Source of the DNA: Entomortierella parvispora E1425
Taxonomy: Eukaryota; Fungi; Mortierellomycota
NCBI GenBank assembly: GCA_020891255.1
Contig: BQFW01000008.1
Span: forward strand, 1,736,001 to 1,800,000
Reading direction: 5' to 3'
DNA length: 64,000 nucleotides
Under the pieces are notes generated by a model. The model did no database searches. It saw nothing but the letters and a program-made list of their open reading frames with translations, and had not been told where the DNA came from. Shown piece by piece: positions 38,157 through 45,919 of this stretch. Each line of letters begins with the position of its first letter. Within the stretch, counting starts at the first letter, position 1. Position numbers and translations under genes: made by a program.

Positions 38157-41100
38157 ATGGGCTCTTCCCTCTCGAAGTCAAAAAAGAAGAACCAGAACCG
38201 AAAGTCGGTTCCCTCAGCACCCCTGTCCTCACAGAAAAACCGGCATGCCCGACCCGCTTCCGAGCCCTCGACTGCCCAGAGCCCATCTCAATGGAATCAC
38301 CAACCCACAACTGCACGCCCACTGGCTGTGCAGGGAGAGGAAAGTGTTCACTACACTCCCATGAACAACTATGACCACAATGACCTTTACCAGGGCAAAG
38401 GCGGCGCAACGGCCAACGTTAGCTCCAGCAACAAGAAGAATCCCAGGAACAGTGGCGGTAACAACACACCACAGCACAGCAACGCGAACCAGCCTCGCAC
38501 CAGTACCTCCAACAGTCGACCCTCTTTCTCGTTGCTTCGTGGTCGAAAGAGCTCTCAGTACCCTCGCGATTCCGATGATGGCCACCAATACCAGCCCATC
38601 CTTCATATCAGTGCACCTATTATCGAGCCCATCATCACTACGGGAAGCAGCAATTACAGCCGGGATGTCACCTATGGATCGTTATCGACTGAGCAAGCAC
38701 CTCCTGCAAGAGTTTATAGATCGAGGCCAAGTCTCGATGCGAATAGATACCAGCAGCAGGTGAACGGCTACGTTGAGCCTCCAAGAGCTCCTGCAACAGG
38801 CGCCTACCGTGCTCCTGTACCAGCACTCCCTACCTCGACTCAAGCATCCTCCCTTTCGCCCCCTCCCCAAATATCCACCCCACCTTTACCATCTCTAGAG
38901 ACTTCTGCATTTCCCGCCCCACCCCAAAGCTACCCATACTCTCAAGAGCCACAACGTCTTTGGCGCGAGAGCCTTCGGAATGCAGCTGCTGTCGAGGGCC
39001 GGAAACCTGATACTGGTCTTGTTCGTTCCAACAGCAACGCCAGTTATACCAGCCACGGCAGTCAGTCTAGCGCTGCATCTTCACCCAGGGGCTACAGGAT
39101 GAATAAGCCTCTGTCCGCATCCACCTTTGGTACTTCAACCCTTTCATCCTCTTCCTCCAATGCCTCTCAATCGAGCTTTGGCATGAGTCGTCAGCGTTCG
39201 TTGAGAACCAACGCCATTCACCCCGAGAGTCCGCAATCTCGCCCCCGACACTTCCTTTCAGAGAGGACGGCTGACAATGCATCGATCATTTCATTGCCAG
39301 GCTCAAGGTTCAGAGAGGGCGGAGCTGGATATGACGACAACGTGGGCTCCGCAGAAGGGTCCATAGTGGGCTCTCCTCAACTGCATCATCACCATCATCA
39401 TCACCAGCAAAACCAATTTCCGTTCCCTTCTGGCGGAAGTAGTCCCAGTCTCTCTGGAGTCAACACACAAAACAATCGCCACGACAGTCAGTTCTCGAGT
39501 CCTCGTCAATCGATGGCGAGTTTGTCACCTTCTCAGGGGTGGTCGCATGTCGCTGCCATGCTCGGTCATCATGATCAGCTTGATGGTTCAACCTTTCCTG
39601 GGTCCATGTCGCCTGGAAGAACTCGCTTTGGCATCAAAACTGCATCATCTTCTGCACGCGAGTCCATCTCCTCGATTAGCACGGCCAACTACCAGTGGAT
39701 GGAGGAGCAGGGAGAGACTTCTGAGGCGCAGGATGCTCTTCACAGGGACTCTCTCTGGTCTCTCTTCAACTCGTCTTCAGCTTCTGATTTCAGTAACTCT
39801 ACCCCTTCCCGTACCAAGAACCTTTTGATCAGCCCCAGTCTTAGCCCCGAGCAATCAGCCTTGCAACGCCAGGAGCAACAGACACAACAGCATGCGCTCC
39901 TCAAATACTTCTTCAAGGGCAACTACCGCGCACCTGTGAACAAGGACGACCTTGGCTCTGTACTTGATGGTAAGTTTTTTGTTATGTAACATTGTTGTCA
40001 TTGTTGAATAGGGTCCCCTAGTTGGGTCATGACGACGCATTAACCTTGTTTCGCGTATGATGAAATGATAATCACGCCTGGTTCTAACTTATATTGCTGA
40101 ATCTCACTCCTTATTAGTCGGCTGCGGTACAGGAATGTGGATGAAGGACATGGCTCTTGAGTTCCCGTTGACAGAAATCCACGGAATCGATCTTGTTGTT
40201 CCAACACGTCGTCGTCGTCCCCGTGTAGCTGCACCTCTTCATTCTTCGTCTTCTCTGGGCAGGAGGGTGGACTCTCATGCCAGTGTTCAATCAGCAGGTT
40301 CCTCTGTCCGATCGTCAGATCCTTTCTTGAGCGGTTTACCAAGGGGCTCTGCTCGATCTGCCACCACCGGAGCTGCACCAGTGATGCTGGATTCTATGCC
40401 CAGCAACTGCTTCTTCCACAAAGGAGACATCACACAGGAGCTGCCATTTGGGGATAACACTTTTGACTATTGTCATGTCCGCTGGGTTCTCTGGGGTTAC
40501 CCTTTGAATGCCTTCCCTGAGCTCTTGACAGAATTAGTTCGCGTGACCAAGAAGGGAGGATGGATCGAGTTTGTGGATATGGATCCCTGTATCAAAAAGG
40601 CAAATGAGTCTGGATTGCGCATCAATGAATGGGTAAGAGGAGATGTGCTTTGATTTACTCCACGAGGCTTTGGCATCGATGTGGACAGCTCGAAACTGAC
40701 AGCGTTTTTAATGCCCAACTTGCTTATCCCCCACAGATCAAGACCGGATTAATCCACAGCAACATGGACCCTGATCTTGTCAAAACCTTACCTCGATTCC
40801 TAAAAGAGTTTTGTGATGCCACAATGGCCGCCACCGCACCTCGAGATCTCGTGCTGGATCCTAGTAACAAAAAAGAGTCCTTTATCCTGCCCTCTGCCCC
40901 CTATGGCCTTGATCATCTCAAGGTCTCCAAGATCTCGCTCCCCTTTGGCCCCTGGGGAGGTCAGGTCGGAGAGCTTTGGCAACAAAACTTTACCGCATTC
41001 TTGCGAGAGTTGGAGCCTATGATGATGGACGCTACTCTTTCTGGTCTCGTCATGGATCAATACCACCGTCAGTGTCAGCAGGAGTTGCAGCAGCTTTATG

Positions 41101-42566
41101 ATGCCTCTAACCAGCGGATGAGCTTTGACGGTAGCCTGGAGGGACAGCAGAGAATTTCCAACTTTGACCAGCGACTTTGCACACACAAGGCTTGGCACCA
41201 TTTGATCCAACAGCTGGTCAAGGACGCCAACCTCTCGTCAGACTCTGTTTCCTCTGGCGCATCCTCGTCCTCCTTCCCGACTCCATTCTCTCGTGGCCTG
41301 GGTCACCCGCCTATTCAGAACCCCACTCCGATGACATCCACATCCTCGATCAAGGAGATGCGGTCGTACAACAACGTTTACATCGCGTACGCTCAAAAGA
41401 TTGATTTGGAGGAGCTGAAGCAGCAACAGTTGTTCAAGCATCTGGAGGAGGAAGTGTTGAGTCCAAACCCCAACCATAGCGCTTCAGCAACTTTTGGCAC
41501 CATTGCCACTGCCGGTGCTGGGGCTATGGAAGGCGCGATGAGTATGGAGCAGGTCTTTGATAAGGCTGAACTCCACTCACCTACGGCATTTGAGGCCGAT
41601 AACAGACTTTCGATAAACGAGAACTTGAAATCAGAGGAGGCGGAAGCTGTCGCGTCTAGCGCTACCCCAGAGAGCATGGTCGATGAAGTCGAGGCAGCAC
41701 ACGAGCCAAAGACGACCACTGATTCCATTGAGCAAGATGAACACCCCATGGCCCAGTTTATTCAGCTTGAGGCCGAGTCTTCGGATGAGGAGGGTCAAGG
41801 CGAGGACACAATTGAGATCCTCAATCGAGTCTCATTGGATGACGTGCAACCAGCTTCTCAAGAACGTGCCAGCGAAAACGCTGAACGCGAGACAGAGGTC
41901 GAGGATCCTGCACTGCAAATGCTCAACGTGACAGACGACGGCGATGACAGCGATATCGAAAACGACGGTGATGATGACAAGGAGGAGGTCTTGCTCATGT
42001 TGGCTCCAGGGTCCCGATCCTCAACGGTTGAGATGGTGGAGCCAGAGCAAGAGTCGGCCCTGGAAGAAAAGCCTACCGTTATCATGATTGATGGTGATAC
42101 GGAGGAGGCCCCTGTTCCCGCCACGGAGGAGATCCCTGTTCCCGCCAAGGAGTCGCTCCCGGTCGAAGGATTAGCCTACGATAGCGAGACCAATGACAAT
42201 GCTCCCGTCATTGTGAAGGAGGCAGAGGAGCAAGGGGTCAGAGAGAACACAGTCAAGGGGGTTGTGGAGGAAGAAGCGAAAGAGACCCCAATTGCAAACA
42301 CTGCCGAGGAGGACCAAGTGGAAGAAGTTGCCGAGCCAGAGGACGAGGAGGAGGACGAGGAGGAGGACGAGGAGGACGAGAGTGAGGGAGAAGAGGACGA
42401 AAAGGAGACCGAGCCCGGGTCCAAGAAAGATTCTTTTGCCGTCGATAGCCAAGGAACACAGGAGGACGATACATCCAGGCCAAAGAGCGTGGATAGGACA
42501 TTGGCCGAGCTTCGCAAGCAAAAGGCGCTGAAGAAGAAGTCAAAGTCCAAGAAGTCTAAAAAATAA
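38157..42566 (+). CDS. Class I SAM-dependent methyltransferase (LaeA/Methyltransf_25-like) of about 1385 aa with disordered N-terminus and acidic C-terminus, 3 exons
   Basis: GNYRAP...VLD|VGCGTGMWMKDMALEFP..EIHGIDL (motif I), NCFFHKGDITQELPFGDNTFDYCH, ELVRVTKKGGWIEFVD; introns 39970-40117 and 40633-40736. Confidence 0.85.
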
Positions 42567-42857
42567 AAGTGACTGCCTTTCAGATTGTGTTTTTTTTTTT
42601 TTTTTTTTTGGTCCATCAATCAATCAATCAATCAATGGGACGAATGCAGGCAGACATGCATCAACTCTCGCAGGGCGGCCTTTGAAAAAAACATTCAATG
42701 CATTTGATTGCAATTGTTTTTTTTTTGGAGGGATTGTTTTCATTTTCTTGACCCTCGAGAGCTCTGTCTCATCATCCTTTTGCTCCTTCCTCTCCCTCCA
42801 TCCCTCCATCCCTCTTCCCGCCATTCATCCTCTTCATCCTTCTCGCTGCTTCATTCA

Positions 42858-45800
42858 ATGGATCATTCGGCACATCTGCAGCAGAACGGCAGGGCTGCAG
42901 GCGAGCAACACCAGCATCCGCTGGCACACCATCCTCATTCGCCGCACCCTCTGCAGCATCATCACCACCCGGTCCACCCCCATGCTCACTCACACCCTGT
43001 CCACCCACCCTCGGCATCATTCCATCATCATTCACACTCTCATCAGTCCCAGCACCAGCACCAGCACCACCAGCAGCACCAGCACCATAGCATGCATCAT
43101 CAACCGCATCCGCACCATCTCCGAGGACACCGGCACTCCACAGACTCTGCAGCAGCAGACACTCTGCTGATGCTTAGTGCCGCGGCCTTCATGGACCCTG
43201 CTGCAGCCCAGTCCGTCCTAGACCAACCTCAAGAGGACAAGCGTGGCCATCACTTTGGTCAAGGCCATCACCCTGCACACCAATCCAATCCACAAGCGCA
43301 CGGCCCTCGACGAGCCTCGCCCTCTCCTCCGCCGCTGCACCAAGGCCATGCCCGTCTGCCCATGGCCAAGACTGTCTCTGCACCTCCTCTGCAGTATCAT
43401 TCTTCCTCTTCCTCCTCGTCTGCATCGTCCCTTCCCCCCTTGCCCCGCTCTGCGAACCATCCCCTCAGAGAGCTTGGAGAGATCGAGTCGACAAGAGGAC
43501 ATCCCCTGTCCATCTCCATTCCCCACAGACAGCAGCACTCCAACGGTGCCAGCATGAGCAATCCACTCTCTGCTCACACAGTCTCTTCCCAGCCTGCCTC
43601 TCCCACAAGAGCCAGAGCTGTAGGATCTGCTGTGAGCATCTCTGCTGTCAATGCAAACAACTCGAGCTTGCCCATGGATCTGGACTCTCCCCACCCCAGC
43701 TCTAGTGCTCCAACCCCTGCAAAGGGCAATGGCATCAGCCAGGACGAGGACGAAGAGGAAGAGGAAGAGGACGAGGTCATGTCCGAAGGTGTTGTCCATG
43801 TGAACAAGACCCTGGCTCCCATTGCGTTGTCCCCTCAGAGCAAAGGTCCTCCAGCCAACTACTTCACCCATCCGCTCCCACCTTTGCCACAGTCCATCTC
43901 GACCCACAGTAACCATTGGTCGCAACAGCAACAGCAGCAACAAGACCAGCCAAAGACGCCAAGAACGCCCAAGCAACCTCGGACTCCAAAGACTCCGAAG
44001 ACCCCCCGACAGCCCAAGAAGAGCCAGAATGGACAGCGTGATTCCTCTGCAGACTTCTTCTATTCACCGTTCCCACTCTCCAGTTCGCCTGCCTCTTCAC
44101 CGTCGTCGCCGTCATCGTTCCATTCGCAGCTTCAGTTGCTCACTCATAACTTTGTGTCGATCCAACCTCATGCCTCGCCTACGAACCGATTCAGGAGGAC
44201 ACCTTCTGCCATCACCCCTGCCACGGCAACGCCCCCGTTCTCTCCACCAGCATCTCCGGGCGTCGAATTGATGCGAGAGACACCATTTTACCCAGGATCA
44301 TCTGCCAACACTTCACCGGTGAAAGATGGGTCTGCCAATCCTACGACCCCAACTTCGGCCGGTTTTCCACGGTCCTCCAGTGGAGCAACCACTCCTCAGA
44401 GGTCCCATTTCAAGCCCCGCTGGCACACTCAACCATACATGATGTTCCTGGCCTTGCGTGCCATGCCAGACCGGACGGCGGCCCGTCAGGAGTTAATCAT
44501 GGCCGCAGTGGAACTCGACAAGAAGTTTAGTGCAGAAAAGGGTCTCCCACGTGTCTTTACGGGCAAAGTAAGTTTCTCGGGCCTTAATGTCTCACACGAT
44601 CAAGAACAAAAAAGCTTGTTGGCTGACTGTTTTTTTTTATATGTCTGCCTTTCCCTCCATGTTAGACTCCGATGAATTCGGCCTCGGCCTGTTTGACCAA
44701 CAACGGTGACAAGTACTTTATTCCTTTCAAGCCAGAAGGTAGCAGGAGTACTCATTTCAGGCTCGCATATCAGCCTGGCAACTTTGACACCGCCGTCGGT
44801 GAATACAACGCGTGGATGGAGCAGCTTGTCCAACGGGATTGGCCTCTGTGCTTCGGAATCCCAAAGAGTCGTCAGCAGTCCGTGAAAGAAGATCCTGCTG
44901 GTGGACGTGATGGTGAATCAAATGATAAGAAGGAGGAAGGAAGACCAGAATTGCATCGCACACACTCATCTTTTGAGTCTAGAAAGCGCCTTCATGGTCA
45001 TACTGAGATGGAACAACACGAAGATGGCGATAATAGCAAAAAAGTCAAAGCCGAGATGGACATCAGCAAGGACGCTCCACAGCAGGACGAGTCTTTGGAA
45101 TCCACAGCTGCAGAAGACAGTAAGGTCACTGACAAGCTCCAGTTGCTCGATCTTCAAAAGAATGGATCCTGCCCTCCTACGCCGACAACAGGGGTGGCCC
45201 CATATCCCAATCCCGAAAGCGACCGGTTTGCATTTGCGTTGGATCTTGGTCGAGGAACAGGCTCTCAATCTTTTTCCTTGCAAGATCGTTTGCAGGATCT
45301 GGATTTGAGTCAAGTGCCCACTAAACTGGAGGATATTGTGCGCGTGGACACGTCCTCGATCCCCAATGCAGGCATGGGACTCTTTGCTGTCAAGGATCTG
45401 CCTGCAGGAACACCTTTGGGATTCTATTTTGGTGTGCCCATGACCGAAAATGAGTTTGACTCTCTCAAGGACGGCGTCGGTCAGGCTTCTCAGTACTCAA
45501 TCATGTACCGCCGGACGGTCTTGGATGCGACGGATGAGAGCGGTCAGCCTTATACAGATCCTTTGGGTCGTCTTTACTGCCCTTTTCATTTCATGAACGA
45601 AGATCCCAATGGCAGCGTCTCTTTCATCACTGGCAGTGTTGTGAACCAAGTCATTTGTACAACAAATCGCGATGTCAAGGCCAACGAGGAGCTGTTTGTG
45701 TTCTATGGAAAGGAGATGGACAGACATTGGGCTGCACAAGGTCAAGACGGTCTTGGGAATGACGGATCTGATTCCAGCAGGAAGAGCCGAGGTGGTTCAC

Positions 45801-45919
45801 GGTCCAGGGCATCCTCTCCATCAAGGAAACCATCCTCAACTGCTGCGGCGATGAGTGTTGATGATGCCGGACGGCCGAGGCGAGAGACTGCCTACAAACC
45901 TATTCGATATACTCGCTAG
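42858..45919 (+). CDS. Chromatin-type protein of about 987 aa: His-rich IDR, HARE-HTH-like winged helix, C-terminal SET domain; 2 exons (intron 44568-44665)
   Basis: SET motifs VDTSSIPNAGMGLFAVKDLPAGTPLGFYFG, FMNEDPN, TNRDVKANEELFVFYG; winged-helix-like block ...GK|TPMNSASACLTNNGDKYF...HFRL. Confidence 0.83.

Follow-up and report, generated by a model that had tools for sequence, protein, structure and literature searches.

A HARE-HTH-type winged helix joined to a SET domain in an uncharacterised protein family of early-diverging fungi

Introduction

What might a fungal protein do that joins a putative DNA-binding winged helix to a SET domain on a single polypeptide, and how far is such a design shared among fungi? 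The question is raised by a two-exon gene of the soil fungus Entomortierella parvispora E1425 (Mortierellomycota), located at positions 42858-45919 on the plus strand of a stretch of 64,000 nucleotides (contig BQFW01000008.1 of assembly GCA_020891255.1, positions 1,736,001 to 1,800,000), which is referred to below as the window. Its product, EMPS_06225 (P0001), is annotated as a hypothetical protein of 987 amino acids. An earlier interpretation of the letters alone, the sequence-only reading, had described a HARE-HTH winged helix fused to an atypical SET domain at this place, and its coordinates prove to be exactly those of the start and stop codons of the gene. It had further proposed that the protein reads a DNA mark, possibly N6-methyladenine (6mA), and writes lysine methylation. 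The analysis presented here points to an old protein family of non-Dikarya fungi, in which the N-terminal domain is linked to HARE-HTH by transitive homology and the SET domain is probably active.

The N-terminal domain

The N-terminal domain comprises residues 519-634 (KPRWHTQ...DWPLCFG), and the alignment A1 of 28 close relatives has a mean identity of 81% over this region. The AlphaFold2 (AF2) model built on A1, with a predicted local distance difference test score (pLDDT) of 80, has its elements in the order helix, strand, helix, helix, strand, strand, followed by a long C-terminal helix, and the region is thus predicted to be a winged helix. The model contains a 19-residue helix 2, a 10-residue loop and helix 3, and no separate extra helix is resolved; an extra helix inserted in the helix-turn-helix of HARE-HTH has been described (Helbrecht et al., 2024). 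Comparison of the model with known structures returned winged helices of many kinds. Forkhead domains stood on top of the Foldseek list against the PDB (E 5e-3 and weaker, TM 0.41-0.46), a shape search of the ESM Atlas gave the protein's own family first and forkhead next at TM 0.47-0.49, and VIA-align yielded a flat plateau at Z 6.8-8.7 that included GPAT1, TubR, histone H5, PCL/PHF1, SAMD1, cullin WHB, Fox, Fur, MarR and a ribosome-associated chain.

The assignment to a family comes from more distant relatives. An exhaustive profile search with A1 over 1.84 billion representatives found 173 clusters at E<=1e-3, 61 of them at E<=1e-30, and supplied the diverged members from which the alignment A3 was made (63 diverse sequences, mean column identity 46%). 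When every member of A3 was scanned against Pfam, HARE-HTH (PF05066) was matched by 10 of the 63, the next family by two and Forkhead by none, and the PF05066 matches are in register, with profile positions 2-65 falling on domain residues 5-80. The strongest match, in P0129:32-151 of the chytrid Clydaea vesicula, reaches 28.2 bits (E 2.5e-6) and exceeds the cut-off of 25.9; it is followed by two proteins of Piptocephalis, P0137 (23.2 bits, E 9.3e-5) and P0130 (19.8 bits, E 0.0011), and by P0115, P0127, P0104 and P0113 (13.8-16.9 bits, E 0.008-0.08), of which P0127 is from a named chytrid and the others are metagenomic or chytrid. Scanned at full length, P0129 carries both domains, HARE-HTH at 24.3 bits and SET at 46.6 bits, and its N-terminal domain is 39% identical to that of EMPS_06225 over 116 residues (E 5e-31). 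By transitive homology, the matches of the relatives to PF05066, together with this kinship to P0129, assign the domain to the HARE-HTH family at the level of sequence profiles. A language-model feature search of P0001:512-642, the results of which serve as leads only, pointed to the HARE-HTH of ASXL1 (0.80), the second winged-helix domain of NFRKB (0.79) and a HARE protein of a chlorophyte (0.76).

The signal is confined to the diverged members. Among close relatives, eight scanned whole and 28 as domains, neither HARE-HTH nor any other Pfam family was matched in the N-terminal domain at E<=10; a six-frame scan of the E. parvispora genome for HARE-HTH found none, and N-terminal domain profiles searched against PDB sequences gave chance matches only, for example to an ephrin receptor. 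The Pfam HARE-HTH profile spans approximately residues 530-594 only, leaving the C-terminal helix outside. The family adds to the basic fold a KPRW motif and this C-terminal helix, which carries an invariant Trp (W106 of A3) and a DWP.CF motif.

The SET domain

The SET domain claimed for this protein was found directly, since Pfam SET (PF00856) matches exon 2 alone at 32.6 bits and P0001 at 31.2 bits (residues 806-918), both above the cut-off of 22.4. When a profile of 40 diverse SET domains of the family (A4) was searched against PDB sequences, the best solved relative was RomA/LegAS4 of Legionella (E 6e-13), followed by SETD7 (E 1.7e-8), KMT2C (E 1e-6) and PRDM9 (E 5e-5). That LegAS4 stands ahead of SETD7 is an observation of separate interest, as it hints that the effector SET domain was derived from a eukaryotic SET domain of this general type.

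The alignment to SETD7 bears out what the sequence-only reading had said of the individual motifs. NAGMG (residues 804-808) lies in NAGMGLFA opposite SAGEGLFS, so that the GxG motif is intact, and EELFVFYG pairs with EELTVAYG, which identifies Tyr917, the last residue of EELFVFY, as the catalytic Tyr; it is also aligned with the Tyr of LLINY in LegAS4. FMNE occupies residues 879-882, and HFMNED lies opposite HKANHS in the hidden Markov model (HMM) alignment, with Asn881 at N296 and Glu882 at H297, confirming the change of NH to NE. Across the family SET alignments A2 and A4 the second G of GxG is invariant and the first nearly so, while no variation is seen in the Tyr of GFYFG, in N881 or in Y917 among 40 diverse members from chytrids to Mortierella. 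Of 89 family members, 87 have the motif H[FY][MIV]N[ED], and NH occurs in none; thus the His of motif III N-H (RFINHS) is replaced by E or D in these 87. The invariance of the residues of the S-adenosylmethionine (SAM) pocket and the catalytic site indicates strong purifying selection, and N-E/D is, judged from this conservation, a family trait of a constrained active site and not a sign of decay.

The post-SET CxCxxxxC zinc motif is also missing, as had been claimed, there being no Cys anywhere after Tyr917, and this places the domain with the SET7/9, PRDM and RomA-like types and not with the SUV39/SET1 type. Both deviations on which the word 'atypical' was based are therefore real, but the word itself overstates the case, because SETD7, RomA/LegAS4 and PRDM proteins likewise have no post-SET cysteines and NE is conserved throughout the family. 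RomA/LegAS4 binds SAM with a dissociation constant of ~2 uM and trimethylates lysine 14 of histone H3, and the role of the catalytic tyrosine has been described (PMC10653858). From its sequence, the SET domain of EMPS_06225 is probably an active lysine methyltransferase.

Family range and architecture

All named HARE-HTH-SET members among the 173 clusters belong to early-diverging, non-Dikarya fungi. They include many genera of Mortierellomycota; Mycotypha, Hesseltinella and Gongronella of the Mucorales and, elsewhere in Mucoromycota, Bifiguratus; the Zoopagomycota Dimargaris, Dispira, Tieghemiomyces, Mycoemilia, Basidiobolus, Piptocephalis, Syncephalis, Massospora and Neoconidiobolus; the Chytridiomycota Spizellomyces, Clydaea, Lobulomyces, Nowakowskiella, Terramyces, Thoreauomyces, Fimicolochytrium and Cladochytrium; and the monoblepharid Gonapodya. 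Neither a Dikarya nor a non-fungal name occurs among the family members, though Dikarya dominate the public fungal genomes. A maximum-likelihood tree of the domain, rooted at the midpoint only and uncertain for four long branches, follows phyla roughly (chytrids with Gonapodya; Mucoromycota; Mortierella with Dimargaris and Basidiobolus), and unnamed metagenomic members fall inside the named clades. In the simplest reading, the gene was present in the fungal ancestor, was inherited vertically and was lost on the Dikarya stem.

The joining of the two domains is a general property of the family. In whole-length scans, all ten diverse full-length members taken to be a single gene reach the Pfam SET cut-off, and four of eight closer members match SET slightly below it (19.5-21.9 vs 22.4 bits). 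A SET match is absent in two members, P0110 (338 amino acids) and P0141 of Hesseltinella vesiculosa (508 amino acids). In P0075 of Bifiguratus adelaidae (1741 amino acids) SET scores 13.5 bits and the gene model runs into a Pex2/Pex12 and RING peroxin (E 1e-42), most likely through an annotation error that ran adjacent genes together rather than through a true fusion. In databases the members are called only 'hypothetical' or 'SET domain-containing', and no description of a HARE-HTH-SET family was found in the full-text literature on HARE-HTH, SET domain and fungi; the bare architecture of HARE-HTH plus SET may have been drawn earlier.

Possible function and alternative explanations

The explanation to which we give slightly more than even credence is that EMPS_06225 is a DNA-anchored, active lysine methyltransferase of an old non-Dikarya fungal family. 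As a nuclear chromatin protein, it would be put on DNA by the HARE-HTH-type winged helix (residues 519-634); the flexible linker would leave the SET7/9-, PRDM- and RomA-like SET domain (residues 787-925) free to act nearby, and this domain would methylate a lysine on a neighbouring protein, most likely a histone tail.

Several observations weigh against this explanation. EMPS_06225 itself gives no match to PF05066 at E<=10, whether searched as exon pieces, as P0001 or as P0001:512-642, so that the HARE-HTH claim of the sequence-only reading, which named the lack of a profile match as grounds for giving it up, fails for this one sequence taken literally and stands through its relatives. No HARE-HTH structure is found within the Foldseek top 50, and comparison of the predicted structure confirms the fold but is unable to set HARE-HTH apart from winged helices of other kinds. 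Small residues predominate in helix 3 (NSASACLT), which presents no obvious base-reading surface. On the side of the SET domain, the AF2 model is poor (pLDDT 56), and the His replaced by E882 is the very residue mutated in H297A, the usual catalytically dead SETD7.

The structural neighbours raise the alternative that the N-terminal domain is a diverged forkhead and not HARE-HTH, to which we give almost no credence. Forkhead tops both the Foldseek PDB list and the named structural neighbours in the ESM Atlas, there is a superficial likeness of motifs (KP-aromatic at the start, N-S opening helix 3), and the canonical forkhead genes of E. parvispora likewise carry an intron immediately before helix 3. 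Nevertheless, at E<=10 Pfam Forkhead (PF00250) has no match among 91 domain sequences (A1, 28; A3, 63) vs ten for HARE-HTH, the VIA Z of forkhead is ~7, tied with H5, TubR, PCL/PHF1, SAMD1, cullin and MarR, and the base-contacting Arg-His of NSIRHNLS, as read in an E. parvispora forkhead gene, is replaced by Ser-Ala (NSASAC) in EMPS_06225. When the N-S pairs are aligned, the forkhead intron (GWQ|NSIRH) and that of EMPS_06225 (TGK|TPMNS) lie 3 codons apart; being near but not identical, the intron positions provide no evidence for a forkhead origin. Forkhead was accordingly rejected as a family assignment, the structural and motif likeness being real and the profile support nil. It is also very improbable that the SET domain is a pseudo-enzyme, in which the change from His to Glu has ended catalysis, leaving a scaffold that binds peptides or methyl-lysine. 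The position of E882 at SETD7 H297 speaks for such a loss, whereas the conservation of GxG, the Tyr of FY-x-G, Asn881 and Tyr917 from chytrids to Mortierella, the fixation of the acidic residue itself in 87 of 89 members and the example of RomA/LegAS4, which has Phe at the His position and is active, speak against it.

The remaining alternatives concern what the winged helix binds. Early-diverging fungi carry 6mA at ApT downstream from where active genes start, in the DNA between nucleosomes with trimethylated lysine 4 of histone H3 (H3K4me3), and finding the readers of 6mA has been named a key next step (PMC13297926; PMC12695648). One possibility is that, in the linker DNA that follows transcription start sites, the HARE-HTH domain reads 6mApT in its symmetric or hemimethylated state, whereupon a lysine of H3, e.g., K4, would be methylated by the SET domain. 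We regard this more specific proposal as unlikely, though it has much to recommend it. HARE-HTH has been suggested to read modified DNA (Iyer et al., 2016), and the HARE-HTH of ASXL1 selectively bound 6mA DNA in pull-downs in one study (Kweon et al., 2019). The named members are all early-diverging fungi, the lineages that use 6mA, while Dikarya are largely without it, and no fungal 6mA reader is known (PMC13297926; PMC12695648); in Rhizopus, 6mA coincides with H3K4me3 and H2A.Z, and knock-down of mta1 alters H3K4me3 (PMC13297926). The genome of E. parvispora has at least three loci that match MT-A70 (PF05063) at family level (G000:C12:978255-978925, C15:263076-263886 and C15:1636553-1636912). 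Of the four closest characterised SET enzymes, three are methyltransferases for H3K4. Against these points, a pattern of presence in early-diverging fungi and absence from Dikarya is common to many genes, helix 3, with its mostly small residues, offers no obvious surface for base reading, and the specificity of HARE-HTH is disputed, Aravind and Iyer (2012) being cited by Helbrecht et al. (2024) in favour of cytosine modifications.

The same helix 3, in which the basic and aromatic side chains usual for base readers are missing, suits a reading in which the winged helix is not a reader of DNA marks at all, serving instead as a generic anchor on DNA or nucleosomes or as a protein-protein module, with the SET domain acting on a non-histone substrate. 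Winged helices that do not bind DNA (cullin WHB, GPAT1 and the ribosome-associated chain) stand among the structural neighbours. The HARE-HTH of the delta subunit of bacterial RNA polymerase may be a protein-protein module, cullin WHB winged helices bind proteins, and SETD7 has many non-histone substrates. The HARE-HTH of ASXL1 is moreover dispensable for the activation of BAP1 on nucleosomes (PMC4729829). This reading is likewise unlikely in our view, slightly more so than the 6mA proposal; conserved basic residues flank the fold (KPRW, R/K before GKTP and R/K in the wing), and prokaryotic HARE-HTH domains are fused to restriction endonucleases and DNA methylases (Iyer et al., 2016).

The functional idea of the sequence-only reading, a DNA-mark reader combined with a lysine-methyl writer and linked to 6mA, plausibly fits the taxonomic range of the family, which is a candidate reader of adenine-methylated DNA in early-diverging fungi. 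If the 6mApT proposal were true, adenine methylation by AMT1/MTA1c would be coupled to active histone marks, and the family would be the missing 6mApT reader of early-diverging fungi and the first eukaryotic reader-writer for adenine methylation, which Dikarya would have lost along with the AMT1 pathway. The family offers a concrete candidate open to genetics. The domain type concerned, for which binding to 6mA DNA has been suggested and in one in vitro study demonstrated, is here firmly coupled to an apparently active lysine methyltransferase, and the family members in Mucorales belong to an order that includes species with routine knock-outs. Even if 6mA is not read, a conserved putative chromatin enzyme lost in Dikarya and without an assigned function would be at hand, as well as a natural experiment on a SET active site in which Glu has replaced the canonical His.

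Gene model and sequence features

Two long open frames on the plus strand, 42708-44675 and 44672-45919, are joined across the intron (Table 1). The peptides on which the HARE-HTH claim was founded are indeed present, PYMMFLALRAMPDRTAARQELIMAAVEL...RVFTGK closing exon 1 and TPMNSASACLTNNGDKYF...HFRLAY opening exon 2. The exon translations, each compared alone, are identical to P0001 residues 1-570 and 571-987, and P0001 (EMPS_06225) was retrieved at 100% identity when the final 81 residues of exon 1 were used in a word search. The intron interrupts the winged helix immediately ahead of helix 3, a site across which homologs of many species run uninterrupted (...RVFTGKTPMNSAS...), and the splice junction 44567/44666 rests on the annotation and on this protein continuity across species. 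A paralog on contig 4, EMPS_03323 (P0032, 546 amino acids), is split at the same profile position.

Table 1. Features of the EMPS_06225 gene, in coordinates of the window
Feature	Position	Strand	Residues and basis
Exon 1	42858..44567	+	Residues 1-570 from ATG; open reading frame and sequence; translation equals P0001 1-570
Intron, 98 nt, phase 0	44568..44665	+	GTAAGT...TTAG; lies inside the winged-helix domain
Exon 2	44666..45919	+	417 aa (residues 571-987, coding to 45916) and stop codon
Low-complexity N-terminal region, His/Gln/Ser/Pro-rich	42858..44411	+	Residues 1-518; no Pfam match; absent from the 546-aa paralog
HARE-HTH-type winged helix, first part	44412..44567	+	Residues 519-570: KPRW motif, helix 1, strand 1, long helix 2, loop GLPRVFTGK; AF2 model, alignments A1/A3, PF05066 matches in relatives
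Winged helix, second part	44666..44857	+	Residues 571-634: helix 3 PMNSASACLT (44669-44698), two wing strands, family-specific long C-terminal helix ending DWPLCFG
Linker, acidic, Ser-rich	44858..45313	+	Residues 635-786; length varies among homologs; no Pfam match
SET domain with conserved flanks	45314..45730	+	Residues 787-925; Pfam SET match at residues 806-918 (45371-45709)
GxG motif of the SAM pocket, G806-M-G808	45371..45379	+	Alignments A2/A4; pairs with AGEGLF of SETD7
HFMNE motif, H878-E882	45587..45601	+	HMM alignment to SETD7/LegAS4; family motif count
Tyr917, catalytic tyrosine of EELFVFY	45704..45706	+	Invariant in A2/A4; aligned with the Tyr of SETD7 and LegAS4
C-terminal tail, Ser/Arg-rich, Cys-free	45731..45916	+	Residues 926-987; ends in basic motif RPRRETAYKPIRYTR, common to the paralog

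The two paralogs end in similar basic motifs after a variable Ser/Arg-rich tail, RPRRETAYKPIRYTR (45872-45916, residues 973-987) in EMPS_06225 and RPRRSNVYMPARYGR in P0032; the motif may act as a signal for nuclear localisation, or form a tail with a regulatory or pseudo-substrate role. In the intergenic DNA 5' of the gene (42600-42640) a poly-T run is followed by a (CAAT)n microsatellite, and the neighbouring gene on that side (40629-42566) codes for a very acidic, Glu/Asp-rich protein.

Elsewhere in the genome, the forkhead genes L001 (G000:C8:1024101-1027250) and L002-L008 have a common intron at ...NGWQ|NSIRHNLS..., and the introns of the HARE-HTH-SET genes lie three codons further upstream relative to N-S. 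A single frame of 755 amino acids at G000:C4:2351179-2352015 (L010, L011) contains two matches, ~660 nt apart, that each cover the forkhead profile over its N-terminal two thirds, and is possibly a tandem forkhead-like protein.

Comparison with known systems

The N-terminal domain is best compared with the HARE-HTH of ASXL1 (PF05066), with which the family has in common a winged helix with a long helix 2, a G-K/T-T/S-P turn before helix 3 and a helix 3 of small residues; in both, the domain is on the N-terminal side of a chromatin-modifying module. EMPS_06225 differs from ASXL1 in being too diverged to score on PF05066, in the addition of the KPRW motif and of a C-terminal helix of ~25 residues (...Y..W...L...DWP.CFG), and in its partner domain, which is SET, whereas ASXL1 has DEUBAD and PHD. 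The SET core, in turn, can be aligned with SETD7 over ~125 residues, with GxG, the Tyr of FY-x-G, the H..N of motif III, the catalytic Tyr and the lack of a Cys-rich post-SET in common. Unlike SETD7, EMPS_06225 has Glu for His297, no MORN-like N-terminal repeats and a short C-terminal flank, YG.E.DR.W, which looks more PRDM-like. RomA/LegAS4 resembles it in being also without the NH histidine (N-F) and is catalytically active, but is a secreted bacterial effector in which C-terminal ankyrin repeats bind the H3 tail and a winged helix is absent.

Readers of DNA methylation are joined to SET in one polypeptide in plant SUVH/KYP (SRA and SET) and animal SETDB1 (MBD and SET), which provide a functional analogy only. 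SRA and MBD read 5-methylcytosine, the SET domains of these proteins are of the SUV39 type with pre- and post-SET zinc clusters, and they act in repression; their architectures are not homologous to that of HARE-HTH-SET. The design of a reader fused to SET is thus itself already known, and what HARE-HTH-SET contributes is an uncharacterised, lineage-restricted family with an N-E active-site signature.

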